From assembly GCA_022605425.2 (NCBI GenBank), contig CM061254.1, positions 62,001 to 126,000 of the forward strand: a stretch of DNA of 64,000 bases. The letters run 5' to 3'. Under the pieces are notes generated by a model. That model worked only from the letters and a program-made list of their open reading frames with translations, ran no database searches and was not told where the DNA came from. The DNA comes from Hamiltosporidium tvaerminnensis FI-OER-3-3. Taxonomy: Eukaryota; Fungi; Microsporidia. Below, one piece after another: positions 24,026 through 58,738 of the stretch. The translations under genes were made by a program, and so were the position numbers. Each line of letters begins with the position of its first letter. Position 1 is the stretch's first letter.

Positions 24026-27000
24026 TTATTTAATAAAATTCTGGGTTAACAAATTTTTCTTTTTAAATAATTCTTTCCACCATTTCAACCACTTCTATCT
24101 CTTCCTCCAACTCCAACTCTTCATTTGTATTAGTTGTTGGTTCCTTTGCTGTGGTTATGCCATCCAAAATAAGGGGTAAAATATTTTTTGTATTTTCCGT
24201 TTTAACATCATCTTTCTCGTTGTCTACTTGCTTTAAAGGGGGTATTGGTTGTTTATGCATCTCAGCTCCTAAGATAACACTTAATGATGCTCTCTCCCAG
24301 CTCTCCTCGGCATTTGGACCAGACTCAAATCCTCTTCGTCGATCAAAAGAAATTGTTTCGACTGTCTTCTTGAGTACTATGGATTGTATATATGCCTCTA
24401 CATTCATGGGTATTTGCAGTCTCTTAACATACGTCTTATGGTATTTTGTCACAATACCGTCCCAGGTCATCACATAAGGAATTATCTCTACATTGCATTT
24501 ATAAATAAGACCTAACTCATTTGCTAATAGGTCATACTTCCTAAGCTTCTCTGTTTCAACTATTTGGAGAGAGTCTTGGGATGTGATTCCTACTTCAATG
24601 AGGGTTATCCTATTCTGTCTCTTGTCTAAAATAAATATATCTGGTCTGTTACACCGAATCTTGACATCAGTTTTTATTCTGGTGTCCACTCTTATCTCTG
24701 CATATTCGTTATCAAGAATTTCTTGAACTGAGTGGCTTCTAATTCGTTTCGAAGACTTAAACTTATATTTATTCAGCAAGAGTAAATGTATACATCGTAC
24801 CACTTCATTATGTCGTCTAGTATAGTCATGACCAAGCATTTTTTCACATCTCGTTGCTAAGTGATCAACAGTTTTCCTAGACTGGTTGCAGTGTTGACAC
24901 ATACCTTCTGCACCCCAGAATACATTTCTATCCTGGATATAACAGAACACTGCTTCATCACGTGGTCTTACACTTCCTTTCTTTAACCATCTTGAGGAGT
25001 CATTTACACTTACCAGCTCGTTATTTCTAGCGCTATATAACTTTGAATGTAGTTTTCGGTTTTTGATTTCGTTATATAGGTTAGCTAGTTGAGCTTCTTC
25101 CAATTTCTTTTTTGTGACTTCCTCTTCCAACCCGTATTTTATTTTTAAAAAGTTTTTAATTAGTGAAAGGTGGGTTTTATTATTATTCTCAACCTTTAGG
25201 ATTGCTGCTCTTCTGGTCGATGTATCTTTATGTTTTTCCAGACAATCCAAGAGTTGCAAAAGCATATGTTCGCTTTTGAACTCGACACTATGTAAACCTC
25301 TTCCAAGTTCTTTACGTGGAAGGTATAGACGTTCTTTGCATCCTGGGCGTAGATGTATTTTGTTCTTTACTAACACTGCACGCACCGCATCATCTAACTT
25401 AGAGAAGTCAGCCGGTTCAAGTCGGAGTACACCTATATGATAGTTTAGTAAAGAAATCGCATGTTGATTAATGGCTTGAAATAAATTTCTTGCATTTAAT
25501 CTCGTGCGACAAAGTCTTTCTACTCGTGCTATAAGTTTAGTCTGTACTTCCTCAAACGACTTACTTGTTGGAATTCCTCTGCTATCTTCTATAATTCCAA
25601 GGTATTTATAAACACCTATTCCTTCAAGAAGAGTAGCAGTATCTTCACAACATGGATCATTAGTGGCTGACTTCTCTTTGTTAATTTCCAATCCTATATT
25701 ATTCATAAACTTTTTAACCTCCTCTGCCATTTCTTCCAATGTTTGTCCATCTTCGGCAAGAAGCTTAAGATCATCAATAAACAAGAGATGATTAGTCGCG
25801 TGGGATTCTGCATCTGTCTTTATTGTCACTTTTGTGTATTTCTCATTAAGCTTTCGGCTCAATGGATCCATACACAACACAAACAATAATGGTGACAAAC
25901 TATCTCCTTGCAGAATCCCTCTATCAATCTTCTTGCTCATGATTTTTTCAGGCCCTACTGATATATCAATTTTCCATTTTGATATAATTACCTTAATAAA
26001 TTTCAGGATCCAATCAGGTAAATTAAGGTTTTCAATGCATTGAGTCAAATAAGCATGATCTATTGAATCATAAGCTTTTTTGACATCAATCCATGTTGCC
26101 TTAAGATTGTTTCCGTACTCTTTATTAATGGCAATATTCAATAGGGCCTGTTCTTTCGCTCCTTGCACTCCTCTTACTGCTCCCAACTGATTTTCTGAAA
26201 GTAATCCTCGTCTTTCCACCTCAATCTGTACCACTTTAGTAACACATTTTGTAGTTAGTTTATACAGATTTGACATACAGGTTATTGGCCTGTAATCAGA
26301 GCCAGTCTTTGGTGTACCTTTAGGTATCAGATAAGTAAGTCCACAATAATACCAATCGGCTTGAGGCGTTCCTTCTAAACATATGGCTTTCACAATATCG
26401 TAAAGATATTTATGAAGGCTCGTAAGTTTCTTGATGTAAAAGTTATAAATACCATCAATTCCAGCGGCTTTCTAGTTAGGCAGCCAATTGATGATATCTA
26501 TAAACTCTTCAAGTAAAGGAAACGTGGTCTGGTGCGTATCTGACACGAAAGGTATTAAATACTCATCATATGTAACTACTTTATCATTTTTATTCCACAT
26601 TGTAGACCAAAATTCTGAAATTTCGTCACGATAAACCACATGCTCGGATTCAACGCGCTCAGATAACCCTCGATAGAATCGACCTCGGAATAACTCAAAC
26701 ATACGATTCTCTTTTCGAAATTTTCTCCTACTATCATACATCGTAATTTTTTTCTCGTACACATTCAAAGCCTCATTCTTCTTAACCAAAGCCTCAGAGA
26801 GATCATTTATTTTGCTTAAGTCTAAATTAAACTCTCGCATAATTTTTCTGAGACTTTTCGTTTCCGAAGTAGAGAGCTTTTCCTGCTTGCGAGCCTTCTC
26901 GAGGAGATCTTTGGAAAGTACTAACTTAGAAATTTTACATTCTATGTTTTCCTTCCAAGCGGATCTAGGTTTCTCCTTACGTGTTTCCTCGTCATAACAT

Positions 27001-27817
27001 ACCTGGGCCGCCTGGATGATTCGAGCTGCATCACTAACATTCTTAGGCACGTGAGATTCAGCATATTCACCTGTGATCCGATTTATGAGTTCCAAAACTT
27101 TACTATCAACCAATTCACTTGGAAGTTTTCTAGTTCGGACCACTACATCTCCGATTTCCTTCTCCGAGAGTTCCTTGATTTTGCACAAGAACTTTTCTCT
27201 CAGGTTCATATAGAGTGTAGTGTCAGTTAAAGAACATGGCTCGGCGAGACAAGTGGCGATTCTACGTCGCTCTCCATTCTCTTCTTGCCTTATTTCTCTT
27301 TCTGCCTCATTATGTGTTAATTTTTTTAACACATCGATATCGACAGTTCGACCAAATTTCCTATTATAGTACCTAAGAATTGCAGACCAGCCATTTCTAG
27401 GCATTCTCTCAAACCTTTTTTGCACTGCTGAAATAGCAGATCTAGGCCATTCCTGCTCTACGGCTGTGACAGAGTCAAGTATTGAATGCAATACCATCAG
27501 TCGATTTACTTCTGGAATGACAGGGGCATTGAGGTTTTCCATTGTGTTGGCTGGTCTACGCGCAGACGAATCGGGACAGGAAGAAGGGAGTGCGGAATCG
27601 AGCAGGCTGATTGGAGTAGCCTGAAACGTATTGCTCGATGAGGAGTGGGTGTTATTATAGATGGTCGGTTGTGGTGGAAGCGTCTCGGATATAGTTACTA
27701 CATCCCTATCACACGTTTTTATCTCTTTAAAACTAATTTCCGAGTTGTTTACAGCATTTATTTCATCATTTTTTATATTTTCGCTGTCAACTTTTTTTCT
27801 TCTACCCATTAGAAATA
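24026..27817 (-). mobile_element. Non-LTR retrotransposon copy A (RT + REL endonuclease, R4/Dong-like), one premature stop
   Basis: Single frame 27809-24063 (1249 codons) broken only by TGG>TAG at 26472. RT motifs QGDSLSP and LFIDD, CQHC..HLATRC knuckle, RHN, RPD..D, IEVG, KLRKY. Confidence 0.92.
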
Positions 27818-27892
27818 TTTTATGAAATATTATAATAAAAATTCTATATGGAAAATTTTATGATATAAAAACGCATTTAAGAACAGATTGAA

Positions 27893-30800
27893 TTATTTAA
27901 TAAAATTCTGGGTTAAAATATTTTTTACCATTTTTATATGTTTTCTTCTACCTCTTTAACCACTATTGTCTCTTCTTCCAAATCCGACTCTTCATTTATG
28001 TTATTGGTCGGTTCCTCTAAAGTGGTTCCTCCTTGTGAAATAAGGGGTGTATTATTTTTTGGTTTAAAATTTTTGGCACCATCTTCCTCTGTTTTCGCTT
28101 CTTTTAAAGGGGGTATTGGTTTCTCATGCATCTCTGATCTCATAATAACACCCATTGACGCTCTTTCCCAGCTCTCTTCGGCATTTAGTCCTGACTCAAG
28201 TCCTGTTCGTCGATCAAAAGAAATTGTTTCGACTGTCTTCTTAAGTACTATAGACTGAATGTATGCCTCTACATTTGTGGGTATTTCTAGTCTTTTAAGA
28301 TGAGATTTATGGTATTTTGTCACAATACCGTCCCAGGTCATCACATAAGGGATTATCTCAACACTACACTTATAAATAAGACCCAACTCATTGGCTAGCA
28401 GGTCATACTTCCTAAGTTTTTCAGTTTCAACTATTTGAAGTGAATCTTGGGAAGAGATTCCTACTTCAATGAGTGTTATCTTATTCTTCTTCTTATCTAA
28501 AATAAATATGTCGGGTCTGTTATTCCGAATTTTAACATCAGTTTTTATTCTGGTGTCCACTCTTATCTCTGCGTACTCATTATCAAGAATTTCTTGAACT
28601 GAGTGACTCCTTATTCGTTTGGAAGACTTAAACTTATATCTATTTAGAAGAAGTAGGTGTAGGCATCTAACCACTTCATTATGCCGTCTAGTGTAATCAC
28701 GGCCTAGCATTTTTTAACATCTAGTTGCTAGATGATCTACAGTCTTACCAGACTTCCCACAATGTTGACACATACTATCTGCACCCCAGAATACATTTCT
28801 ATCCTGGATATAGCAGAACACAGCTTCATTTCGTGGCCTAATATTTCCTCTCTTTAGCCATCTTGAAGAGTCACTAACACTTACAAGCTCATTTTTTCTT
28901 GCATTATATAACTTTGAATGGAGTTTTCGTTTTTCTATTTCGTTATATAGTTTTGCAAGTTGAGCTTCTTCTAAACTTTTCTTAGTGACTTCTTCTACCA
29001 ACCTGTACTTTACTTTTAAGAAGCCTTTTATTAGTGCAAGATGGGTTTTATTATTATTCTCCACCTTGAGGATTGCTGCTCGTCTAGTTGATATTTCTTT
29101 ACTTTTTTCCAGACAATCCAAGAGTTGCAGAAGCATATGTTCGCTTCGCAACTCTACACTATGTAAGCCTCTTCCAAGTTCTGTTCTAGGAAGGTATAAA
29201 CGCTCTTTACATCCTGGGCGGAGATGTATCTTATTCTTCACCAACACCGCACGCACTGCATCATCTAACTTAGAGAAGTCAGCCGGTTCAAGTCGAAGTA
29301 CTCCTATGTGGTAGTTGATTAACGATATCGCATGTTGATTGATTGCAGAAAATAAATTTTTTGCATTTAATCTAGTGTGACAAAGTCTTTCAACTCTTGA
29401 TATAAGTTTGCTCTGTACTTCTTCAAATGAGCTACGTGTTGGGATTCCTCTGCTATCTTCTATTATTCCTTAATATTTGTAAACACTAACACCTTCTAGA
29501 AGAGTAGCAGTATCTTCACAACACGTATCATTTGTGGCTGACTTCTCTTTGTTAATCTCTAAGCCAATCACCTCTAAAAATTCCTTTGCCTCGCCTGTCA
29601 TAGCACTCAATGTGGAGCTGTCTTTTGCAAGGAGCTTAAGATCATCAATAAACAAGAGATGATTAGTAGAATGGGATTCTGCATCTGTTTGTACTGTCAC
29701 TTTTGTGTATTTTTCATTAAGCTTTCGGCTTAATGGATCCATACACAACACAAACAACAATGGTGACAAACTATCTCCTTGCAGAATCCCTCTATCAATC
29801 TTCTTGCTCATGATTTTTTCAGGCCCTACTGATATATCAATTTTCCATTTTGATATAATTACCTTAATAAATTTCAGGATCCAATCAGGTAAATTAAGGT
29901 TTTCAATGCATTGAGTTAAATAAGCATGATCTATTGAATCATAAGCTTTTTTAACATCAATCCATGTTTCCTTAAGATTATTTCCATACTCTTTATTTAA
30001 GGCAATATTCAGTAGAGCCTGCTCTTTCGCTCCCTGCACACCTCTTACCGCCCCTAATTGATTCTCTGCAAGCAACCCTCGCCTTTCCACTTCAAGTTGA
30101 ACGACTTTCGTTACACACTTTGTCGTTAACTTATAGAGGTTGGACATACAAGTGATTGGCCTGTAGTCAGAGCCTCTTCGTGGAATTCCTTTCGGTATCA
30201 AATACGTAAGCCCGCAGTAAAACCAATCAGCTTGAGGTGTTCCTTCTAAACATATAACTTTCACAATATCATAAATATATTTGTGAAGAGTTGTAAGTTT
30301 CTTAATGAAAAAATTGTAAATACCATCAATTCCAGCAGCTTTCCAATTGGGAAGCCAATTAATGATATTTACAAATTCATCAAGTGAAGGAAACGTGGTC
30401 GGATGATTATCTGATACAAATGGAATCAAATAATCATCGTACGTGACTGTGTCATCATTTTTGTTCCACATTGTAGACCAAAAACTCACAATTTCATCAC
30501 GGCTAACCACATGCTCGGATTCTACACGCTCAGATAACCCACGATAAAATCGACCTCGGAAAAGCTCAAACATACGATTCTCTTTTCGGAATTGCTTCCT
30601 ACTTTCATGCATCGTAATTTTTTTCTCGTAAACATTCAAAGACTCATTCTTCTTAACTAAAGCCTCAGAAAGATCAGTTACACTGCTCAAGTTTAAATTA
30701 AACTCTCGCATGATTTTCTTAAGGCTCTTCGTTTCCGAAGTGGAGAGCTTTTCCTGCTTACGAGCCTTCTCGAGAAGATCTTTGGAAAGTACTAACTTAG

Positions 30801-31749
30801 AAATTTTACTTTCTATGTTTTCCTTCCAAGCGGATCTAGGCTTCTCTTTACGTGTTGCCTCGTCATAGCATACCTGCGCAGCTTGCATGATATACGCGGC
30901 TTCCGTAATTGACTCAGGTACATGAGCTCCTGCATATTCACCGACTACTCGATTAATGAGATCCAGAACTTTACTATCAACCAGTTCATTTGGATGTTTT
31001 CTAGTTCGGACCACCACTTTTCCAATTTCCTTCTCCGAGATTTCTTTGATTTTACTCAAGAATTTATCTCTCAGGTTTATGTACTCCGTGGTGTCGTTCA
31101 AGGTGCATGTATCAGCGAGACAAGTGGCGATTCTACGTCGCTCTCCATTCTCTTCTGATTTTACATCCTTTCCCATCTCACTTTGTGCCAATTTTTTTAA
31201 CACTTCGAGAGTTTCAGTGCAGCCGAATTTCTCATTATAGTACCTGTGAAGCTCTGTCCAGCCATTTCTTGGCATTCTTTCAAACCTTGTCTGTACTGCA
31301 AAAAAAACAATTCGAGGCCATTCCTTCGGGTCGGCTGTTACGGAATCGAATATAGTCCGCAATGCCATTAGCCTGTTACCTTCCGGAATAGCTAGAGTAC
31401 AGGGGCTTGTCATGTCGTACGATGGCTCGCACGCAGAGACTTCAACCGAAGAGGGAACTGGTGCATTAGGCGAAGGTAAGGTGTCAAGCCCACTATTTTG
31501 CATTTTACTGCATGTTTGGCTTGGTGGTGGAGGTGTTATTGTTGTGTAGGAGGAGGAAGGTAGGGGAATCGCCGGTGGGTGTAGCTTACATTTTTGTACC
31601 TCACTATCACTCTTCTTCACCTCATCAGCGTCGTTCGCAGCCTTTGTTTTGGTATTATTCGATATTTCGCTGCTAACATTTTTCTTTCTACCCATTCCAA
31701 GTAAATTCATACAAATATGTATTTTTAAAAAGCTAAATCTTATTAACAC
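27893..31749 (-). mobile_element. Non-LTR retrotransposon copy B, head-to-tail with A, two in-frame stops
   Basis: ORFs 29470-31749, 28714-29256 and 27934-28710 share one frame, with TAA at 29470 and 28714. The likely true start is MGRKK at 31695 (cf. MGRRKK in A). Confidence 0.92.
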
Positions 31750-32229
31750 ATTTGATATAATTTCTAAAATGTATTTAGCAGATAGTTTTTAAAATGCATA
31801 TTTAAATATAGAATAAGTATTATAAAAAGAAGAATACTGAAAAAAACTAAAAGTGAAGAAATAAATATAAAAAAAATATAAATAAAATTTGGTTAAAACT
31901 TCTTTATGACTTTTATAAATTTCTTTTCATCTTGATATAATTAAAAGTAATTTTATATCTTTTATTTTATTTTTTTTTATTTTTTTTTATTTTATTTTGT
32001 TGGTATTATAGAGATTTTATATATTTCCAAGAAAAATTGATTCCTTTCCTAAAAAAAAGCTTAAATATCAATATTTTTTTGGAAACCAATAGATTTTTAG
32101 ATGAGAAGATCAGTAGATATAATCTTTGAGAAAAAAAAAATTAAATAATCAAAGAAAGGGGGGTGTTAGTATAGATATGAAAACCTTTTATAGAATATTT
32201 TTATAATGAGGGGTGTTATGTCATGTCAG

Positions 32230-32730
32230 ATTGAATAACACCTCTTACCATAGTACACTATATAATAACACCCCTTTAACGCACTACACTAGATAATAAC
32301 ACCCTCTTCTTTACAATCCTTACATTAACACCCTTTAACACAGTAATTATAAAATAACACCCCTTTAACATACTACACTATATAATAACACCCTTTAACA
32401 TACTACACTATATAATAACACCCTCTTCTTTACAATCCTTTACATTAACACCCTTTAACACACTAAATTATTAAATAAACCTTTTAACATACTACACTAT
32501 ATAATAACACCCCTTAACACACTACACTATATAATAACACCCTCTTCTTTACAACCCTTTACATTAACACCCTTTAACACACATCACTATATAATAACAC
32601 CCTCTTCTTTACAACCCTTTACATTAACACCCTTTAACACAATAAATTATTAAATAACACCCCTTTAACATACTACACTATATAATAACACCCTTTAACA
32701 CACATCACTATACAATACCACCCTTTATGA
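32230..32730. repeat. TAACACCC-based degenerate satellite downstream of poly(A) polymerase
   Basis: Units of ~30 bp such as ctatataataacacccctttaacatactaca, with higher-order repeats. Confidence 0.9.
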
Positions 32731-32938
32731 TAAATCCAGTAATAAACCCTTTAGTTGATATAACTTTACAATTAAAAAAATAACCTTTTATTTACAGTTT
32801 AAATCATACATTAATTTTTATAATAGAAATATGTTTTAAATAATATTTTAAACATTAAAAATCTTCTTTTATTTTTAAAAATTTAAATTTCCTTCATTCT
32901 CACTAATTTTATAATTAAAACCCTTTTTATATTCAAAT

Positions 32939-35900
32939 TCATTTTTTAATTCTTTTATTTTCATTTAAATCTTTATTTATATTTCTTAACATATTAACAC
33001 CCTGTTGTTTATTAGTACTGGTAATAACAGGGTGTTGTTCATTATTACCCGTAGTAAGACCCTTTTGTTTATTAGTTCTGGTAATAACAGGGTGTTGTTC
33101 ATTATTACTCGTAGTAAGACCCTTTTGTTTATTACTACTGGTAATAACAGGGTGTTGTTCCATATCCCTATTACTAATACCCTGTTGTTCATTAGTACTG
33201 GTAATAACAGGGTGTTGTTCCATATCCTTATTACTAATACCCTGTTGTTCATTAGTACTGGTAATAACAGGGTGTTGTTCCATATCCTTATTACTAATAC
33301 CCTGTTGTTTATTAGTACTGGTAATAACACCCTTTTGTTTATTAGTACTAGTAGTAAGACCCTTTTGTTCATTAGTACTGGTAATAACAGGGTGTTGTTC
33401 CATATCCCTATTACTAACACCCTGTTGTTCATTAGTACTGTTACTAACAGGGTGTTGTTCCATATCCCTATTACTAACACCTTGTTGTTCCTTAGTACTG
33501 GTAATAACAGGGTGTTGTTCCATATCCCTATTACTAATACCCTGTTGTTCATTAGTACTGTTACTAACACCCTCATCTATACCTCTACTGATATTAACAC
33601 CCCCTACATCCCTACCTCTGTTACTAACACCCCCTTCACTACCCTTACTGTTACTAACACCCCTCTCTTTAGTATAAGCCCTCATAAAAACACCAACCTC
33701 ACTTCTCTTAACAACCTTAACACTAACACCCCCATCCCCACATTCTTTACCATTTTCTTTTAAATACTCAATAAATTCTTTAACCTGTTTATCTACAAAT
33801 ATTCTTTTCCCAGGAACTCTAAACTCATTTAATTGTAACCCTATAAAGAATACAGACACATCTTCATTAACACTACTTACAAATAAAGGATAATCCTTTC
33901 TACAACTACACTCCAACCCACAAATATTTTTATTAAAAAGTTTTTCAAAATTTTTATTTAATTTATTATTACTGTTACTAAGAGGGTGTAAGTTATTAGA
34001 TAGATTGTTACTAAGATCCTGTTGTTTATTATTACTATTGTTAAGAGGGTGTAAGTTGTTAGTACTGTTATTAAGACCCTGTTGTTTACTACTATTGTTA
34101 TTAAGACCCTGTTGTTTATTAGTACTGTTATTAAGACCCTGTTGTTTACTACTACTATTATTAAGACCCTGTTGTTTATTAGATAGATTACTAAGACCCT
34201 GTTGTTTATTACTACTATTATTAACACCCTCTAATTTACCTATACTGTTATTAACACCCTCTAATTTACCTCTACTATCCCTAACACCCCCTTCACTACC
34301 CTCACCCTTTACACCCCCTTCACTACCCTCACCCTTTACACCCTCTATATTCTTTACATTCTCTACCTTATTACACCACTTAACCCTAAACACCTTAGGA
34401 TATGGAATAACACCCCCAAACTCTTCTAACACCTCCATACGTTGACACAACACTCTAATCTTACTTTCTACATAACCTTCCCATACTTCAATATCCATAG
34501 AATTACATATAACAGTCATATAAAATCTATAACGTGTAAAAAAATCAGAAGGAGCAAACAACTTAGACCATAGTGTTACTTCATCTTTATTTAAAGGGTG
34601 TTGTTTATTATTATTGGTATTAACAGGACGTAAGGTATTATTACTTATATTTAAAGGGTGTAAGGTATTAGTACCTATATTAAGACCCGGTACACCACAA
34701 GTACCTATATTAACACCCCCTCCTTTATCACTAACACCCCATGCCATACTCTTATCACTAACACCCCCTCCTTTATCACCCCCTAAAATCTCACTAACAC
34801 CCCCTCCTTTATCACCCCCTCCTATCTCACTATCACCCCCTCCTATCTCACTATCACCCCCTCCTATCTCACTAACACCCCTTACATACTCATCTATTAT
34901 ATTACTTGCTTTCTTCATTTCCTCTACAATAACACCCAACGTACTACTACTTACATTATGCGTAGAACACATATAAGGATAAGCAGGTGTAATAACAGGC
35001 ATCTTATGAAACCTATCACCCGGACAACTCTTAGGATCCCATACCTTAAGATTTAACCCACATTCCTCATACTCCCTTATAATAACAGGTACAGGCCATT
35101 TCCATTCACTAAAAATTTTAAAAAATTTTTTTAATAAATAAAAAGCATTTCCATTCGGATAAAGTAAACATATTTTAGCAACACATATTGCATAACTAAC
35201 ACCCCCCATATACCCATATACATTACCATATAACCCTTTACGTTTAGCCCATAATTTAACACCCTTTAAACATACTCTAAAATTCTCTTTATTATTAACA
35301 CCCTCTAATATTATATCAGTTACTCTACTACCATTAACACTTAATATACATTTCTCATCCATACCCTTTAAAATATTATTATTTAGTAAACATAACCCTT
35401 TATCTATAAACATAGTATTTAACCTACAAAATACTAAATCTATATTTATATTAGAAATACGTAATTTTATAAGAGGAACATAAGCATGTTCAACAACAGC
35501 AATAACAAGGATATTATTATTATTTGTATTTATTTCTTTATTATTATTTGTATTATTTATTTCTTTATTTGTATTTATATTAGTATTTGTATTATGTGTA
35601 TTTATATTAGTATTTATTTCTTTATTTGTATTACTACTACTAATATAATCTTTACCCTTACTACTACTAATATTATTATTATTATTACTATTTATATTAC
35701 CCTCACTACTAATATTATTATTACCCTTACTACTATCTAATTCCTTATAATCTCTACTACTACTAATATTATTATCTAATTCCTTATAATCTCTACTACT
35801 AATATTACCGTTACATCTTAGATAATCTACAAATGTGGTAAAGAAATCAGTTCTTGTAATAAATCGAGGAAACAATACTAAAGTATCTATATCAGAATAT

Positions 35901-36172
35901 TGTGAATTAACACCTAATCTATAAGATCCAAATGTATAAATAAGTGATGTGTAATTTCTAGGGGGGAGATTTTTTTGGGTGGCTATGTGTTTAGTGTATT
36001 TGAGAGTTAAAATGTGTAAAAGTGAAAGTACTTTTTCGTGGGTGTGTTGTAGGTGTGGGGGTTTTGTGTAGTAGGTGGTGTTTAGGTGGTGGGAGAGTGA
36101 TTTTGATAGTTTTATGTCGAGAGGTGATGGTTTTTTAAGGGAGAGGGGTGTTGTTGGTGTGTTGTGTTGCAT
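32939..36172 (-). CDS. PAP1: Poly(A) polymerase with large in-frame repeat insertions
   Basis: FGSYRLGV..SDIDTL, VPLIKL..NIDL, SVNGSRV, KLWAKRKGLYGNVYGYMGGVSYA, WKWPVPV, MPVITPAYPYMCSTHNV and GYVESKIR, in one 1077-aa uninterrupted frame. Confidence 0.95.
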   Translation of the reverse strand: MQHNTPTTPLSLKKPSPLDIKLSKSLSHHLNTTYYTKPPHLQHTHEKVLSLLHILTLKYTKHIATQKNLPPRNYTSLIYTFGSYRLGVNSQYSDIDTLVLFPRFITRTDFFTTFVDYLRCNGNISSRDYKELDNNISSSRDYKELDSSKGNNNISSEGNINSNNNNNISSSKGKDYISSSNTNKEINTNINTHNTNTNINTNKEINNTNNNKEINTNNNNILVIAVVEHAYVPLIKLRISNINIDLVFCRLNTMFIDKGLCLLNNNILKGMDEKCILSVNGSRVTDIILEGVNNKENFRVCLKGVKLWAKRKGLYGNVYGYMGGVSYAICVAKICLLYPNGNAFYLLKKFFKIFSEWKWPVPVIIREYEECGLNLKVWDPKSCPGDRFHKMPVITPAYPYMCSTHNVSSSTLGVIVEEMKKASNIIDEYVRGVSEIGGGDSEIGGGDSEIGGGDKGGGVSEILGGDKGGGVSDKSMAWGVSDKGGGVNIGTCGVPGLNIGTNTLHPLNISNNTLRPVNTNNNKQHPLNKDEVTLWSKLFAPSDFFTRYRFYMTVICNSMDIEVWEGYVESKIRVLCQRMEVLEEFGGVIPYPKVFRVKWCNKVENVKNIEGVKGEGSEGGVKGEGSEGGVRDSRGKLEGVNNSIGKLEGVNNSSNKQQGLSNLSNKQQGLNNSSSKQQGLNNSTNKQQGLNNNSSKQQGLNNSTNNLHPLNNSNNKQQDLSNNLSNNLHPLSNSNNKLNKNFEKLFNKNICGLECSCRKDYPLFVSSVNEDVSVFFIGLQLNEFRVPGKRIFVDKQVKEFIEYLKENGKECGDGGVSVKVVKRSEVGVFMRAYTKERGVSNSKGSEGGVSNRGRDVGGVNISRGIDEGVSNSTNEQQGISNRDMEQHPVITSTKEQQGVSNRDMEQHPVSNSTNEQQGVSNRDMEQHPVITSTNEQKGLTTSTNKQKGVITSTNKQQGISNKDMEQHPVITSTNEQQGISNKDMEQHPVITSTNEQQGISNRDMEQHPVITSSNKQKGLTTSNNEQHPVITRTNKQKGLTTGNNEQHPVITSTNKQQGVNMLRNINKDLNENKRIKK

Positions 36173-36185
36173 GTGAGGGGTATAA
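36173..36185 (-). promoter_or_regulatory. Microsporidian CCC-like motif upstream of the start codon
   Basis: The sense strand reads tatacccctcacATG. Similar CCC/GGG motifs precede the ATGs at 1823, 14448, 37608, 44525 and 58672. Confidence 0.55.
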
Positions 36186-37320
36186 TGTGGGGTAGGGATA
36201 TAAGGGGTAGGGATATAAGGGGTGGGGATATAAGGAGTAGGGATATAAGGGGTAGGGATATAAGGGGGTGTAAAGTATTAGTAGATGAATAGGGTGTTAG
36301 TATATAGTAAGGATGTGTTAGAGGGTGTTAGTAATAATGAGTAGGGATATAAGGGGGTGTTAAGTATTAGTAGATTATTGTAAGGGTGTTAGTATATAGT
36401 AGATGATTGTAAGGGTGTTAGTGATAAGGAGTAGGGATATAAGGGGGTGTTAAGTATTAGTAGATGATTGTAAGGGTGTTAGTAATAATGAGTATAGTTA
36501 AGAGGGTGTTAGTAATAAGGAGTATAGTTAAGAGGGTGTTAGTGATAAGGAGTATAGTTATAGGGTGTTAGTGATAAGGAGTATAGTTAAGAGGGTGTTA
36601 GTGATAAGGAGTATGGTTATGAGGAGTATAGTTAAGAGGGTGTAAAGTAATAAGGAGTAGGGATATAAGGGGGTGTAAAGTATATACTAAGGATGTGTTA
36701 GAGGGTGTTAGTATATAGTAGATTATTGTAAGGGTGTTAGTGATAAGGAGTAGGGATATAAGGGGTGTTAGTAATAGTAGATTATTGTAAGGGTGTTAGT
36801 ATATAGTAAGGATGTGTTAGAGGGTGTTAGTAATAATGAGTATAGTTAAGAGGGTGTTAGTAATAAAGAGTATGGTTATAAACGTAAAGTATTAATAGAT
36901 GATTATAAGGGTGTTGGTTTAGAGTAAGGATGTGTTAGAGGGTGTAAAGTATTAGTAGATTATTATGAGGGTGTTAGTGATAAGGGTAGTAAGTTAAAGG
37001 GTGTTAGTAATAAGGAGTATAGTTATAGGGGTGTTAGTAGTAATGAGTATAGTTATAGGGGTGTTAGTAATAAAGGAGTATGGTTAAGAGGGTGTTAGTA
37101 ATAAGGAGTATAGTTAAGAGGGTGTAAAGTAATAAGGAGTAGGGATATAAGGGGGTGTAAAGTATATACTAAGGATGTGTTAGAGGGTGTTAGTAATAAG
37201 GAGTATAGTTATAAGGGTGTTAGTAATAAGGAGTATAGTTAAGAGGGTGTAAAGTATTAGTAGATGATTGTAAGGGTGTTAGTTTAGAGTACTAATGAGT
37301 AAGAGGGTGTTAGTATGTGT
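36186..37320. repeat. AGGGTGTTAG-based G-rich satellite in the divergent intergenic region
   Basis: Many agggtgttagt/agggtgtaaagt cores at ~30-bp spacing. It begins with 15-bp GGGGTAGGGATATAA units. Confidence 0.92.
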
Positions 37321-37607
37321 ACTATATACTAACACCCTTTAACCATACATTTTATCCTTTCCTCCACTCCCTCTATTATAATAATACCCCTTACCCCTCT
37401 ACAACCTTTATATAATAATTCTATTACAACCCCTTATATATGTCAACCTTTATATAATAATTCTATTATAAACCCTTCTATTATAATTCTACAACCTTTA
37501 TATAATAATTCTAACTTAAACCCCTTATATATGTCACTCCTCTATCATAATTCTATTATAACAACTCTACAACCCTTATATAATAATTCTATTACAACCC
37601 CTTATAT

Positions 37608-38384
37608 ATGTCAACCAAGCTATTTAAAACTTACAACCTTTCTCTTATAATAGAAAACCTTTCTTCTTTAAAAAATTTAAATAAAATAAAAAAAAATCGT
37701 ATTTGTATAAAAGGAGGTGTTAAAGATATGAAAATTAAAATATTAAAAAATACTTTAAATTTTTTAATTTTTAAATATAAAGAAATAGAAAAAAATATAT
37801 TTCAAAGTAATTTTAGTGTTAAAAGGTATAAAGAAGTTATTAATATTTATAAGGGTGTTAGTTATAAGATAGAAAGTGTTAATACAAGTATTTTAAATGA
37901 AATTTATAAATTGTTTTATAGAAGAATAGGAAGAGAGTGTAATGTATATAATGGTATTACTATATATGAATGTGGTAATAAGGATAGTAATATAGGGCAA
38001 GTGGATATTAATTTGGATATTAATTTGGATACTAATTTGGATACTAATAATATAGATAGGAATATAGATAGGAATATAGATAGGAATCTAATTAGGAATA
38101 TAGAAAAGAGTGTAGATAGGAATATAGAAAGGAGTATAGATAGGAATATAGAAAGGAATATAGATAGGAATATAGAGGGTAATATAGAAAGGAGTATAGA
38201 AAGGAGTGTAGATAGGAATATAGAGGATAATAAATATATCACTAATGAAGATTATAACATAGAAAGGAGTATAGAGGATATAACAGAATGTAATATTGAC
38301 TTTAATAGGTTTGTAGAGTTTGATGTAAATGATGAAGAATTAAAGGTATTGGAAAGGATATATGATTTTATAGATAGGGGGTGA
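37608..38384 (+). CDS. Hypothetical protein with NI(D/E)R tetrapeptide repeat
   Basis: 258-aa ORF with a CCC motif before the ATG and 12-bp repeats at ~38045-38225. No family recognised. Confidence 0.6.
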   Translation: MSTKLFKTYNLSLIIENLSSLKNLNKIKKNRICIKGGVKDMKIKILKNTLNFLIFKYKEIEKNIFQSNFSVKRYKEVINIYKGVSYKIESVNTSILNEIYKLFYRRIGRECNVYNGITIYECGNKDSNIGQVDINLDINLDTNLDTNNIDRNIDRNIDRNLIRNIEKSVDRNIERSIDRNIERNIDRNIEGNIERSIERSVDRNIEDNKYITNEDYNIERSIEDITECNIDFNRFVEFDVNDEELKVLERIYDFIDRG

Positions 38385-38389
38385 TAATA

Positions 38390-38940
38390 AGAGTAGGATA
38401 TAGGGTGATAGTAATAAGGAGTATAGTTAAGAGGGTGTTAGTAATAAGTAGTAAGGAAGAGGGTGTTAATAAAAGTAGTAAGGAAGAGGGTGCTAGTAAT
38501 AAGTAGGATAGAGGGTGTTAACATAAGTACTTATGATCAAAAGGGTGTTAGTAATTAGTACTATGACTAAGAGGGTGATAATAAGGGATATCTTATTAAG
38601 AGGGTGTTAGTAATACTGTAGTCAATAAGAGGGTGTTAATGATAAGTACTAATGAGTAAGAGGGTGTTAGTAATAAGACATATGTTATTAAGAGGGTGTT
38701 AACATAAGTACTTATGATCAAAAGGGTGTTAGTAATTAGTACTATGACTAAGAGGGTGATAATAAGGGATATCTTATTAAGAGGGTGTTAGTAATACTGT
38801 AGTCAATAAGAGTGTGTTAGTAATAAGACATATCTTATTAAAAGGGTGTTAGTAAAAGTGGTAATAAATAAGAGGGTGTTAATGATAAGTACTAATGATT
38901 AAGAGGGTGTTAGTAATTAGTACTAATAATTAAAAGGGTT
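38390..38940. repeat. AGGGTGTTA-based satellite with internal ~180-bp duplication
   Basis: Same core as 36186-37320. The block acataagtacttatgatcaaaagggtgtt...gtagtcaataaga occurs twice. Confidence 0.9.
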
Positions 38941-39324
38941 ATTTATCCTAATTATATTAAAAGCTTTTAATCTTTTACAAATTTGTATTTTAAATTCTTA
39001 AAAAATAAATTATTAGTTTATTTGGTATATTAAAGCTTTAGAAAAGATAAATAAAATAAAAATTATTTGGTTGGTGTTAGACCATGTAGAATTTATAATA
39101 CATTGTATTTTAAGGTAGGTAATGATAATGTGTATAAATTTCTAGAAATTTTTCTAGTAAAAATATATAAAAAATAGAAAATTATTTTGTAGTTTTTCCT
39201 ATCACTGTATCATACACTATGATTCTATAAATAATATATTTTAATTTAAAAGCTTAGAAACCTTACTTACTTGGGTTAGAAGTCTTAAGTGATAATTAAA
39301 GAATATGTTTTAAAAATATTGTAA

Positions 39325-42300
39325 TTTTATTTAATAAAATTCTGGGTTAAAATATTTTTTCCCATTTTTATATGTTTTATTCTACCTCTTTAACCACTAT
39401 TGTCTCTTCTTCCAAATCCGACTCTTCATTTATGTTATTGGTCGGTTCCTCCAAAGTAGTTCCTCCTTGTGAAATAAGAGGTGTATTATTTTTTGGTTTT
39501 AAAATTTTAACACCATCTTCCTCTCTTTTCTCTTCTTTTAAAGGGGGTATTGGTTCCTCATGCATCTCTGATCTCATAATAACACCCATTGACGCTCTCT
39601 CCCATCTCTCTTCGGCATTTAGTCCTGACTCAAGTCCTCTTCGTCGATCAAAGGAAATTGTTTCGACTGTTTTCTTAAGTACTATAGACTGAATGTATGC
39701 CTCTACATTCATGGGTATTTCTAGTCTTTTAAGATGAGATTAATGGTATTTTGTCACAATACCGTCCCAGGTCATCACATAAGGGATTATCTCAACACTA
39801 CACTTATAAATAAGACCCAACTCATTGGCTAGCAGGTCATACTTCCTAAGTTTTTCAGTTTCAACTATTTGAAGTGAATCTTGGGAAGTGATTCCTACTT
39901 CAATAAGCGTTATCTTATTTTTCTTCTTATCTAAAATAAATATATCGGGTCTGTTATTCCGAATTTTAACATCAGTTTTAATTCTGGTGTCCACTCTTAT
40001 CTCTGCATACTCATTATCAAGAATTTCTTGAACTGAGTGACTCCTAATTCGTTTTGAAGACTTAAACTTATATCTATTTAGGAGAAGTAAGTGTAGGCAT
40101 CTAACCACTTCATTATGCCGTCTGGTGTAGTCATGACCTAGCATTTTTTCACATCGAGTTGCTAGATGATCTACAGTTTTACCAGACTTGCCGCAATGTT
40201 GGCACACTCCATCTGCTCCCCAGAATACATTTCTATCCTGGATATAGCAGAACACTGCTTCATTTCGTGGCTTGATATTCCCTCTCTTTAGCCATCTTGA
40301 AGAGTCACTAACACTCACAAGCTCATTTTTTCTTGCATTATATAACTTTGAATGAAGTTTTCGTTTTTCTATTTCGTTATATAGTTTTGCAAGTTGAGCT
40401 TCTTCTAAACTTTTCTTAGTGACTTCTTCTACTAACCTGTACTTAACTTTTAAGAAGCCTTTTATTAGTGCAAGATGGGTTTTATTATTATTCTCCACCT
40501 TGAGGATTGCTGCTCGTCTAGTTGATATTTCTTTACTTTTTTCCAGACAATCCAAGAGTTGCATAAGCATATGTTCGCTTCGCAACTCAACACTATGTAG
40601 GCCTCTTCCAAGTTCTGTTCTAGGAAGGCAAACGCTCTTTACATACTGGGCGGAAATGTATCTTATTCTTCACTAACACCGCACGCACTGCATCATCTAA
40701 CTTAGAGAAGTCAGCCGGTTCAAGTCGAAGTACTCCTATGTAGTAGTTGATTAACGATATCGCATGTTGATTAATTGCAGAAAATAAATTTTTTGCATTT
40801 AATCTAGTGTGACAAAGTCTTTCAACTCTTGATATAAGTTTGCTTTGTACTTCTTCAAATGAGCTACGTGTCGGGATTCCTCTGCTATCTTCTATTATTC
40901 CTAAATATTTGTAAACACTAACACCTTCTAGAAGAGTAGCAGTATCTTCACAACACGTATCATTTGTGGCTGACTTCTCTTTGTTAATCTCTAACCCAAT
41001 CACCTCTAAAAATTCCTTTGCCTCACCTGTCATAGCACTCAATGTAGAGCTATCTTTCGCAAGGAGCTTAAGATCATCAATAAACAAGAGGTGATTAGTA
41101 GAGTGAAATTCTGCATCTGTTTGTACTGTCACTTTTGTGTATTTTTCACTAAGCTTTCGGCTTAATGGATCCATACACAATACAAACAACAATGTTGACA
41201 AACTATCTCCTTGTAGAATCCCTCTCTCAATCTTCTTGCTCATGATTTTTTCAGGCCCTACTGATATATCAATTTTCCATTTTGATATAATTACCTTAAT
41301 AAATTTCAGGATCCAATCAGGTAAATTAAGGTTTTCAATGCATTGAGTTAGATAAGCATGATCTATTGAATCATAAGCTTTTTTAACATCAATCCATGTT
41401 GCCTTAAGATTGTTTCCGTACTCTTTGTTAATGGCAATATTCAGTAGAGCCTGCTCTTTTGCTCCCTGCACACCTCTTACCGCCCCTAACTGGTTCTCTG
41501 CAAGCAACCCTCGCCTTTCCACTTCAATTTAAACGACTTCGTTACACACTTTGTCGTTAACTTATAGAGGTTGGACATACAAGTGATTGGCCTGTAGTCA
41601 GAGCCTCTTCGTGGAATTCCTTTCGGTATCACATACGTAAGCCCGCAGTAAAACCAATCAGCTTGAGGTGTTCCTTCTAAACATATAACTTTCACAGTAT
41701 CATAAAGATATTTGTGAAGAGTTGTAAGTTTCTTAATGAAAAAATTGTAAATACCATCAATTCCAGCAGCTTTCCAATTGGGAAGCCAATTAATGATATT
41801 TACAAATTCATCAAGTGAAGGAAACGTGGTCGGATGATTATCTGATACAAATGGAATCAAATAATCATCGTACGTGACTGCGTCATCATTTTTGTTCCAC
41901 ATTGTAGACCAAAAACTCACAATTTCATCACGACTGACCACATGCTCGGATTCTACACGCTCAGATAACCCACGATAAAATCGACCTCGGAAAAGCTCAA
42001 ACATACGATTCTCTTTTCGGAATTGCTTCCTACTTTCATGCATCGTAATTTTTTTCTCGTAAATATTCAAAGACTCATTCTTCTTGACTAAAGCCTCAGA
42101 AAGATCAGTTACGCTGCTCAAGTTTAAATTAAACTCTCGCATGATTTTCTTAAGGCTCTTTGTTTCCAAAGTGGAGAGCTTTTCCTGCTTACGAGCCTTC
42201 TCAAGAAGATCTTTGCAAAGTATTAACTTAGAAATTTTACTTTCTATATTTTCCTTCCAAGCGGATCTAGGCTTTTATTTGCGTGTTGCCTCGTCATAGC

Positions 42301-56059: not shown

Positions 56060-58738
56060 TTATTGAACTATAACCGTAATTTCATATATTATCAAGTCTT
56101 CAAATTTTCTCATATTATCAGAAGAAATACTTGGATTTATTAAAACAATATGATTCAGGTGCTTCAACGATGAAGTAATTGAAATTGAAGAAAAATAGAT
56201 CTCGAAAGTGCAGTCTTTGAAATGAAGGTGTGTTAATAAATATTGTTGATTTATGAATTGAAATATTTCGTAAGTGACAACTGTTTTTGTTAGAATCAAT
56301 GTGTTTAGTTTTGTAAAAAACATTAGATTGTTCTCTTTAGGAGAATTTCTAAAAATTGAATTTTCTAACGTAATAGAGAGATATTCAAGATTTTTAATCT
56401 GACTTAACAAATAAAAATCCTCCTTACCAAACTGATTTCCAGAGATATCTAATTTTTCTAATGAAGAATACAGAGAATTGATTAAAATGATACTCATAAA
56501 ACCTTCTTTAAGATTACATCTAGCGAGTATTAACTCCTTAAGAAATTCAAATTGATTCAAGAATACAATATCAGCTGCTAAAAACTTAGTGTCGGATATA
56601 TCAATTGAGATTAAATGTTCTCTGAAAGGATATTCTTCATCTAAACTCACGTCTTCCACCCTAAGTGAGCCAGAGAGTTTTATACTTTCTAAAATTTGAA
56701 ATTTCTTTAAACATTCAATGATAAACGAATTAAGACAGCATTTACTTAGATCCAGTGCTTTCGTGGATACGTGCAAAGAATCTAAAGTTAGCATTTCTAG
56801 TAAATCCTCCCAATTCAAACCCTGCATTGACAAACTTATGACTTTAAAATTGCTAGAATAGAAATTCATAAAAGAACTGTTCAAAACACACTGAGAAATG
56901 TCTAAGAAACGATATTTTTTTTGCAACAATGAAAAGTTTGGCGTACTGCGAATATACAAAAAATTAATATTTTTCAAACTCAAAAATTCCAATCTACTGG
57001 ATTTTACTAAAAACCTTATTACATTATAACCCAAACAAGAATTATCTAGTTTTAACTCACATAATGTATTAATTCCATCAGAAGATTCTAAGTCTTTACT
57101 TTTGGTGTCATTAAACGTAGACCATGAAAGATCCAAAGATTCTATTTTCAAATTTAATAAAGATTTAAAGAACGCAGTTGTCAAAAGAGCATAATTGATT
57201 TTAAGTGATTTCAGGTTTGGAAATAAAAAATCTAGCTGGCCTAAGAATAAACTATAAGCAGGTATTTTGCAATTATAGAACACTAAGAATTCTATTTTGA
57301 CAAATTTTCTTATATAAGATAAAAAATATTTTGATATATTTACTCTTTCTAGTTCTAAAAATTTTATTTCCTCATTATTACGCGAAATGATCGATTCCAA
57401 TATTTGTAATTCACACAGTTGTAATTCACAAGAGGGTAATTCTTGTGCTATATTTTCATATTTACAATCTTTAGCCTTTTCCTGACATTCCGAATAATAT
57501 ATATTATCATGAGATATTTTTATACCCGATATCTTAAATAGCGACATAAGCCAATAGAATATAGTAAGATTATGTTTAGATTCTGTTTCCAAAAGAATAA
57601 TTACTTCGGGTGTAAGCCGTATGTAAATATCAACAATTTCATTTTTTTCGAATAAAAATAAGTTGATTTTACTTTCTCTCTTCAGAAACGATAATTCATT
57701 GGTATTTTTATTAAATTTTACTTCGACTTTATCAAAAAGAACATTTAAAAACGGTAAAAACAAATATTTTTCCATTGATAATATATTTTTTGGTGTTTCA
57801 ATGTGAATATAAATCGAAATATCGTTCATGAAAATAATTAAGCATGTAAGTAGACTTTTATAAAAATTAAGTATCACATCTGTTTCCGCGTAACAATGTA
57901 AATCATAAAATAGATGTAAAAAGGTGATGAAACCGTCGAATTTTAAATTCATACACTTCTTATCATAGCCAAAACGTAAAACGAAAAGAAAAATTTCAAA
58001 TGTTTTAGCATCAACATTTGTTTTTGTCAAATCAGTAATATTATATTTTACATGGTTCAATTCCAAATCAATATATTTATTAAAATATTTATTTTGGATT
58101 AGAAACTTATCCGAATATTCAAATATTATACTTGTATGAGTTCTTTTTATCCATTCTTTATTTTCAAATTCACTTAAATCAGTAGTTTTTTGTTTTTTCT
58201 TAGAGCTTAGATCCAACGGTTGCATTTCTTCATCATAAGAAATTCTTTCATTATAGGTTTCACACTGACCTGATATACCATACAGAGTAGTTTTTATTGC
58301 GTCTGATTCTGGCAAAAACCAATCTTGCTTTCTTTTTTCGCCTGAGATCTCGATATCAATACGATTTGTTCCGAAAGCCTCATTTCGATTATTTTCAGTT
58401 GAAAGAGCGCCATGCACAGCAGTATCATTCTGGCTTCCTCGAAGATTCGTTTCCGGTTTCAATACCGTAGCTAGTTTATGATATACACAGGTGTCACAAG
58501 ATTTATCAATATTTTCAACGGTTGTATTGCACCTGTCACAAAAATGTTCGGCTTCGTTTAAAAAAGAAATTTCGATTTGCAAGCATGTACATTTTCGCAA
58601 CAAAATAGAAGGATATATATATATTAGACATAGTTTTATTATGGTAAAACTATAAATTATCTCTATTTTCATAACTTCTCTATGGGCTATTTTATTTCTA
58701 CGAAATTTACAGAAAATTGCTTCATCAATTCTTGCCAT
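56060..58738 (-). CDS. Leucine-rich-repeat protein, secreted type, with PLDLS motif and possible BTB-like domain
   Basis: C-terminal LRRs (LKSLKIN, IESLDLSWS, LCELKLDNS, LEKLDISGN, LEYLSI). A hydrophobic segment follows Met23 (58672), which is preceded by a CCC motif. Confidence 0.85.
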   Translation of the reverse strand: MARIDEAIFCKFRRNKIAHREVMKIEIIYSFTIIKLCLIYIYPSILLRKCTCLQIEISFLNEAEHFCDRCNTTVENIDKSCDTCVYHKLATVLKPETNLRGSQNDTAVHGALSTENNRNEAFGTNRIDIEISGEKRKQDWFLPESDAIKTTLYGISGQCETYNERISYDEEMQPLDLSSKKKQKTTDLSEFENKEWIKRTHTSIIFEYSDKFLIQNKYFNKYIDLELNHVKYNITDLTKTNVDAKTFEIFLFVLRFGYDKKCMNLKFDGFITFLHLFYDLHCYAETDVILNFYKSLLTCLIIFMNDISIYIHIETPKNILSMEKYLFLPFLNVLFDKVEVKFNKNTNELSFLKRESKINLFLFEKNEIVDIYIRLTPEVIILLETESKHNLTIFYWLMSLFKISGIKISHDNIYYSECQEKAKDCKYENIAQELPSCELQLCELQILESIISRNNEEIKFLELERVNISKYFLSYIRKFVKIEFLVFYNCKIPAYSLFLGQLDFLFPNLKSLKINYALLTTAFFKSLLNLKIESLDLSWSTFNDTKSKDLESSDGINTLCELKLDNSCLGYNVIRFLVKSSRLEFLSLKNINFLYIRSTPNFSLLQKKYRFLDISQCVLNSSFMNFYSSNFKVISLSMQGLNWEDLLEMLTLDSLHVSTKALDLSKCCLNSFIIECLKKFQILESIKLSGSLRVEDVSLDEEYPFREHLISIDISDTKFLAADIVFLNQFEFLKELILARCNLKEGFMSIILINSLYSSLEKLDISGNQFGKEDFYLLSQIKNLEYLSITLENSIFRNSPKENNLMFFTKLNTLILTKTVVTYEIFQFINQQYLLTHLHFKDCTFEIYFSSISITSSLKHLNHIVLINPSISSDNMRKFEDLIIYEITVIVQ

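Follow-up and report, generated by a model that had tools for sequence, protein, structure and literature searches.

A conserved PLDLS peptide with an adjoining lysine cluster in a Hamiltosporidium leucine-rich repeat family is a plausible candidate for mimicry of host CtBP docking

Mimicry of PxDLS, the docking motif for the corepressor CtBP, is established for the adenovirus protein E1A and also for other proteins of DNA tumour viruses. E1A ends in QPLDLSCKRPRP, with its PxDLS embedded in a nuclear localisation signal (NLS) (PMC5930299), and in arthropods the consensus for Drosophila dCtBP is P-DLS-K, as in the short-range repressors Knirps and Snail (PMC3640014). Among eukaryotic parasites, Toxoplasma gondii secretes the effector TgIST, which reaches the nucleus of the host cell and was co-purified with NuRD and CtBP1/2 (PMC4995087). 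Here we describe an E1A-like peptide, QPLDLSSKKKQK, in a leucine-rich repeat (LRR) protein of Hamiltosporidium tvaerminnensis, a microsporidian that parasitises Daphnia magna. The analysed DNA (the window, 64,000 nucleotides, G000:C9:62001-126000) belongs to a 21.6-Mb assembly of 17 contigs and contains the whole gene as one open reading frame (ORF) at 56060..58738 on the minus strand (892 residues plus stop codon), whose product is a 100% match to the NCBI hypothetical protein CWI37_0437p0020 of H. tvaerminnensis (assembly position G000:C9:118063-120738). We regard the peptide as a good candidate for host mimicry, plausible though unproven.

Translation of the DNA confirmed to the base the motif pointed out by a sequence-only reading of the window. 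The reverse complement of 58205-58219 is CCG TTG GAT CTA AGC and gives PLDLS at residues 174-178, flanked by Q173 (58220-58222) and S179 (58202-58204), and 58187-58201 reads AAG AAA AAA CAA AAA and gives KKKQK at residues 180-184. In contigs of one further run that hold this stretch (X4, library kind not recorded), no difference is listed inside 58187-58222, 16 differences being not displayed. The family was scanned with the expression P[LVIPME][DENS][LM][VASTRG] for the Eukaryotic Linear Motif (ELM) class LIG_CtBP_PxDLS_1, and PLDLS at 174-178 matches this core pattern. A lysine follows two positions past the core, in the window gene as PLDLS-S-K and in lineages B and C (see below) as PLDLS-C-K. 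Given the amino-acid composition of the family, the chance expectation per 892 residues is 0.012 for PxDLS and 0.0015 for PLDLS. A lone PLDLS is thus uncommon, yet could arise when many windows are scanned, and it is conservation, as judged from the alignments, that takes the motif beyond chance.

Three paralogue lineages (A, B and C) have QPLDLS(S/C)KKKxK at a matching place in the linker; they share 35-40% pairwise identity over their full length, and their linkers are otherwise barely alignable. In lineage A, the window gene reads QPLDLSSKKKQK, the orthologue of another strain PLDLSFKKKQK and that of H. magnivora PLDLSSKKKQK; in a 62%-identical paralogue that neighbours the window gene on its contig, the island is QPLDLRTNKKQK/RK. 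Both species also have lineage B, with QPLDLSCKKKFK in P0006, P0007 and their relatives, and lineage C, with QPLDLSCKKKIK or FK in P0023 and its relatives. Three-way comparison of the linker (residues 60-195) gave 15% identical columns, or 20 positions, of which 10 fall within residues 173-184 and four within the island KRKxD (135-139). With 10/12 positions identical three ways, the 12-mer from residue 173 is the second best of the whole protein, after the GIKISHDNIYYSE block of the folded part. The codons behind these residues differ between lineages A, B and C (P CCG/CCT/CCA; L TTG/TTA/CTC; L CTA/CTG/TTA; S AGC/TCT/TCT). Because the codons differ while the amino acids are kept, selection on the peptide rather than gene conversion is indicated. 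On this comparison, purifying selection is holding the peptide within the clade while the rest of the linker diverged.

These data also bear on whether the motif is a functionless chance match that merely looks conserved because the paralogues diverged recently or exchanged sequence by gene conversion. Lys, Leu, Asp and Ser are frequent in this AT-rich genome, and PLDL[ST]xK peptides do occur by chance elsewhere in it, namely in L031 and, within an ankyrin repeat, in L041. The carrier lineages are, however, only 35-40% identical and use different synonymous codons within the motif. By our own arithmetic, 10/12 identity within any given stretch of 12 residues has a binomial probability below 1e-8 at a background of ~5%, which is our estimate, from alignment positions, of three-way identity in the rest of the linker, and of ~3e-5 at a background of 15%. 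Moreover, the chance copy of L031 is gone in a 92%-identical relative. We consider a chance match highly improbable and close to refuted.

All motif carriers form one clade in a quick maximum-likelihood tree (Shimodaira-Hasegawa-like approximate likelihood ratio test support 99), and nothing comparable was found at the motif position in the family members examined outside it. Within the clade the motif was lost twice, in the intact member L004 and in a stop-interrupted copy in which it has decayed to KPIEQY. Conservation, one of the properties by which the sequence-only reading proposed to judge the motif, holds for three lineages of one clade, whereas enrichment does not: a family-wide or genome-wide excess of PxDLS was ruled out, the motif being confined to that clade. 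A genome scan for PLDLSxK-type codons returned 16 matches versus 5 in the control, with long frames only for the clade copies and two unrelated ORFs.

Two apparent further carriers were rejected. L031 (L031:1030-2016, G000:C1 ~1764199-1765185), an unrelated 329-residue ORF that encodes a textbook signal peptide and a body rich in Asn and Ser, was considered as a second secreted carrier. Relatives with 92% and 63% identity lack its PLDLTAK, and L031 is used here as a negative control for motif conservation. The relatives of L031 are ~160-200 residues longer at the C-terminus, and the L031 copy may be truncated. The PLDLSIK of L041, an OSBP-like protein, lies inside the ankyrin-repeat consensus and reflects structural context.

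The conserved island (residues 173-184, 58187..58222, minus strand, like all features of this gene), which fits PxDLS and P-DLS-K and continues into a K-K/R-x-K/R cluster, lies in a fast-evolving linker (residues 60-195, 58154..58561) whose 15% three-way identity comes mostly from two islands. The sequence-only reading had called this linker hydrophilic, and indeed AlphaFold2 gave predicted local distance difference test (pLDDT) scores below 50 throughout residues 63-194 and of ~26 over residues 170-190, so that the motif is, on this model, accessible within a disordered linker; burial in a fold, which would have spoken against the idea, is not what the model predicts. Within KKKQK, the residues KKQK match the monopartite NLS pattern K-K/R-x-K/R in this exposed region and are a predicted NLS. 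The second island, KRKQD at residues 135-139 (58322..58336), was recognised in the three-way alignment as the first conserved basic island (KRKxD) and is also NLS-like; akin K[KR]xKxD clusters were found in many family members. Runs with at least four basic residues in five occur in 14/23 family linkers (1.8 expected from shuffles) and K[KR]x[KR] in 15/23 (3.3 expected), counts that are inflated by the relatedness of the members.

Conservation proves constraint and does not name a partner, and the island might therefore be a functional linear motif for something else: an import or sorting signal in which the lysine cluster is the active part, a processing site that frees the BTB-like/LRR body of its N-terminal anchor, or a docking site for another host or parasite partner. 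Basic clusters are a linker feature across the family, and with the KRKxD island ~35-45 residues upstream the region could be one long bipartite import signal, comparable to that of E1A (PMC5930299). An NLS, however, leaves the invariant Q-P-L-D-L-S, which has no basic residue, unexplained, and a specific pocket is needed to account for six such residues being kept over ~2 substitutions per site. Since a single clade carries the motif, it is not the general export or processing signal of the family. To our knowledge, the CtBP cleft is the only described reader of PLDLS-x-K. Taking both sides together, we rate a function of this other kind as rather unlikely. Docking of host CtBP is the job that we tentatively favour for the motif, on the strength of its sequence, while stopping short of calling it probable.

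If CtBP is the reader, it must be that of the host, because no CtBP-type domain was found in the parasite genome and the host has CtBP. Searched in six frames, the parasite genome gave no match to the 2-Hacid_dh_C domain (CtBP-type dehydrogenase), which was matched in 14/14 control genomes. In line with the sequence-only reading, by which CtBP is not known in fungi, CtBP is described as a bilaterian invention, fungi having only ~30%-identical dehydrogenases, and a D. magna sequence is part of the arthropod alignment of CtBP C-terminal domains (PMC9907507). The peptides PLDLS-S-K and PLDLS-C-K fit exactly the P-DLS-K of Knirps and Snail, and the host here is likewise an arthropod. In contrast to these Drosophila proteins, which are DNA-binding proteins of the host itself, the window protein is the parasite's and no DNA-binding domain was detected in it.

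The closest likeness is to E1A, whose C-terminal pairing of motif and NLS had been correctly stated in the sequence-only reading. The eight-residue run QPLDLSCK of E1A recurs unbroken in lineages B and C and at 7/8 positions in the window gene, with a basic cluster directly after; in addition, the linker around the motif is disordered and has another basic cluster further upstream, and the organism is an obligate intracellular parasite of animals. No homology was seen beyond the peptide, as all significant relatives are Hamiltosporidium or generic LRR proteins, and because the likeness is restricted to eight residues it is to be understood as mimicry or convergence. The arrangement also differs: the window motif is internal (residue 174 of 892) and that of E1A C-terminal, the upstream basic island lies ~35-45 residues off compared with 21 in E1A, and the carrier is a large LRR protein with a signal-like N-terminal segment rather than a small viral hub protein. 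CtBP binding by the window motif is, unlike that of E1A, a prediction from sequence alone.

TgIST is a precedent of another kind, being likewise a protein of a eukaryotic intracellular parasite proposed to engage host CtBP in the nucleus. Its case was shown experimentally and concerns an apicomplexan protein of unrelated sequence, for which the paper names no PxDLS motif (PMC4995087). In the literature searched, we found no paper linking microsporidia functionally to CtBP or Hamiltosporidium to the LRR family of the window gene, and no microsporidian report of a CtBP-type motif or of a BTB-like domain in such LRR families. The idea of a host-CtBP target is thus new for microsporidia but not for eukaryotic parasites; what we propose would carry a known strategy over to a new scaffold and a new phylum; it is neither a new principle nor homology to E1A.

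For the motif to meet host CtBP, the linker would have to leave the parasite cytosol. The sequence-only reading had taken Met23 as the start of the protein. Upstream of it, residues 1-22 show protein-level conservation across the lineages (M.R.N...YCKF.K.K), so that translation most likely starts at Met1. A start at Met23 was rejected on the same grounds, and one at Met172 was rejected as Met172 is not conserved. The basic N-terminal flank (residues 1-26, 58661..58738), which itself shows this protein-level conservation, has a net charge of +3 ahead of the hydrophobic core. It is followed by a hydrophobic segment (residues 27-47, 58598..58660), a candidate signal-peptide core or type II signal anchor on the basis of hydropathy and AlphaFold2, with a best 17-residue Kyte-Doolittle score of 1.96 (window from residue 31) and a modelled helix over residues 16-46. 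Such a segment is present in 31/31 family members examined, with net charges of +1 to +11 before and -6 to +2 after it. By the positive-inside rule, charge bias predicts which side of a membrane segment is translocated. The linker and the domains are accordingly predicted, from charge and hydropathy, to be translocated, either after cleavage near a conserved Cys or with the hydrophobic segment as a type II anchor.

That Cys opens a short conserved element (residues 52-59, 58562..58585), in which the β-strand LQIEISF comes next. All 19 aligned members have C52 and F59, AlphaFold2 modelled a strand over residues 53-58 (pLDDT ~80), and the pattern Cxx[IV]x[IVLM]xF recurs at about residue 52 in 28/31 family members, where it is among the best-conserved family features. 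With C50 and C52, small residues occupy positions -3 and -1 ahead of L53, which is suggestive of a cleavage site, and a signal-peptidase cut after C52 is possible. The confident β-strand 53-58 stands ~135 disordered residues away from the folded body.

The folded body begins with an α/β domain (residues 196-345, 57704..58153), for which structure searches and Pfam pointed to a weak similarity to the BTB/POZ (+3-box) fold. Folded alone, this domain had no match in Foldseek searches of the PDB or in the ESM atlas, and a PDB profile search returned no BTB. An exhaustive VIA-align comparison placed NPR1, SPOP, KLHL22, KEAP1, KLHL11, BTBD6, BCL6 and further BTB chains near the top of its list, at Z 4-6, which is within the tool's stated noise range, covering residues 1-113 to 1-144 of the domain model; Pfam BTB matched 1/19 members (E 0.0056). 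We term the domain weakly BTB-like, and not BTB, on the strength of these models. The remainder (residues 346-892, 56063..57703) is an LRR solenoid of RNI/NLR type by AlphaFold2, Foldseek and the family profile. Foldseek matched it to NLRP, TLR, ribonuclease inhibitor and internalins with E values of 1e-10 to 1e-7, Pfam LRR_4 and LRR_6 gave only sub-threshold matches in the window protein, and the family profile matches thousands of LRR proteins. The AlphaFold2 model of the 892-residue protein has a mean pLDDT of 72.

RNI-type LRR and BTB/Skp1-like folds are typical of intracellular ligase adaptors, and the protein might accordingly stay in the parasite, as a membrane-anchored or nuclear BTB-like/LRR adaptor of its own ubiquitin or signalling machinery, with the motif binding a parasite protein. 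The parasite genome holds at least one weak cullin-like open frame (one was found), and secretion is itself a prediction from sequence. In contrast, the positive-inside charge predicts a non-cytosolic location of linker and domains in 31/31 members, and no CtBP-type partner was found in the genome. In addition, a genus-specific, multi-copy, fast-evolving and partly pseudogenised family has the usual profile of host-exposed proteins, unlike core machinery. A purely parasite-internal role appears quite improbable in light of these features.

To return to host CtBP as the partner, one clade of the family gained the linker motif QPLDLS(S/C)KKKxK, which purifying selection has kept since. We propose that the protein would be translocated out of the parasite cytosol into the host cell, where the lysine cluster next to the motif and the upstream KRKxD island would drive nuclear import and PLDLS-x-K would dock into the PxDLS cleft of the host CtBP corepressor. 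CtBP complexes might then acquire a further activity or binding partner through the LRR and BTB-like body, or that body might draw CtBP away from its repressors by titration. Both export to the host and nuclear import are inferred from sequence features. With more reserve than the docking itself, we consider that the protein may be an exported BTB-like/LRR scaffold on which PLDLS-x-K and NLS together form a convergent E1A-type module that captures host CtBP in the nucleus. In its boldest form, the BTB-like domain would couple CtBP to a cullin-type ligase, whereby CtBP-dependent repression would be degraded or rewired; such coupling is attractive, but the fold call behind it is weak.

Several observations weigh against this proposal. 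PxDLS-like peptides generally show a high false-positive rate. The core function of the family does not require the motif, which neither the other members examined nor L004, an intact member of the clade, possess. The paralogue L002 reads PLDLR-T-N, which fits the ELM-type pattern given above but has lost the K at +2. Secretion is predicted from hydropathy and charge only; 17-mers of similar hydrophobic score also occur within the LRR, and cleaved signal peptides usually have a shorter n-region than this. Finally, three RNA runs (2026, labelled as a related species) contained no parasite reads, the locus included.

Very few microsporidian effectors have a known host target, and Daphnia-Hamiltosporidium is a classic system for studies of coevolution and of vertical and horizontal transmission. 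A 12-residue peptide that is demonstrably under selection and has a single obvious candidate receptor, host CtBP, provides a directly testable hypothesis on the reprogramming of host transcription. If correct, CtBP-docking mimicry, so far known from DNA tumour viruses, would extend to a eukaryotic parasite, and Microsporidia would gain their first described case of linear-motif mimicry of a transcriptional corepressor.

The window gene belongs to a family that is, by sequence searches, multi-copy and confined to Hamiltosporidium. A six-frame search of its own genome returned at least 51 matches to the family, many of them intact and many with stops, and a profile search of 1.84 billion representative proteins gave ~40 strong relatives. 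The clusters looked up hold only H. tvaerminnensis and H. magnivora proteins, and beyond the family only generic LRR matches (e.g. NLRC5-like) were seen. Comparison of 19 full-length members together with AlphaFold2 revealed a common plan of basic flank, hydrophobic helix, Cys and β-strand, ~135-residue linker, α/β domain and LRR solenoid. Expanded lineage-specific LRR or host-exposed families reportedly exist in Trachipleistophora, Spraguea and Nematocida. Like these, the window family is genus-restricted and multi-copy and combines a signal-like N-terminal segment with an LRR body; it differs in that no sequence relatives were found outside Hamiltosporidium, generic LRR matches aside. Many members are clustered in the first 200 kb of contigs (C9, 118-182 kb; C17, 31-104 kb; C8, 26-39 kb; C7, 136-144 kb), which hints at subtelomeric arrays.

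Interrupted paralogues were read as they stand, unrepaired and unjoined, and without spliced models. The lineage C copy on contig C14 (L040, G000:C14:298069-298089, minus strand, with L005, G000:C14:296021-298072) reads QPLDLSCKK and then departs from the frame of its intact orthologues in other strains (P0023, P0156 and P0160). The frame breaks at the run of lysine codons, with a stop 8 codons past the lysines, and this copy may be either a true pseudogene or a long-read homopolymer assembly error. The lineage B copy (L007/L032, G000:C3:689836-691962) keeps the motif in a 555-residue ORF, while the remainder of the gene contains three TGA and three TAA stops; in other strains and in H. magnivora, lineage B is intact (855-867 residues). 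Unless assembly errors are the cause, strains thus appear to differ in their intact motif-bearing copies, and if real rather than artefacts such differences could bear on strain-specific virulence. The window protein itself has 95.6% identity to an H. magnivora protein and only 90.9% to that of another H. tvaerminnensis strain (P0192 and P0195 compared), an order of identities that suggests trans-species polymorphism, hidden paralogy or fast diversification of the locus at 56060-58738.

The window as a whole has a G+C content of ~25%, and its other genes encode a TPR/Cdc23-like protein, a RasGEF, a pyridine-nucleotide disulphide oxidoreductase and a poly(A) polymerase. Two reverse-transcriptase ORFs of 776 and 759 residues (RVT_1 E 1e-29 and 2e-26) lie at 24063-31749 on the minus strand, in a block whose G+C content of 36-37% compares with ~24% around it, and probably represent two retrotransposon copies in tandem. 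The adjoining region at 32001-40000 shows an extreme strand composition: the GC skew lies between about -0.43 and -0.46 over 32-36 kb and turns to +0.67 and +0.32 over 36-40 kb. The negatively skewed 32-36 kb covers the poly(A) polymerase ORF (1077 residues), which carries long insertions between its Pfam domains.

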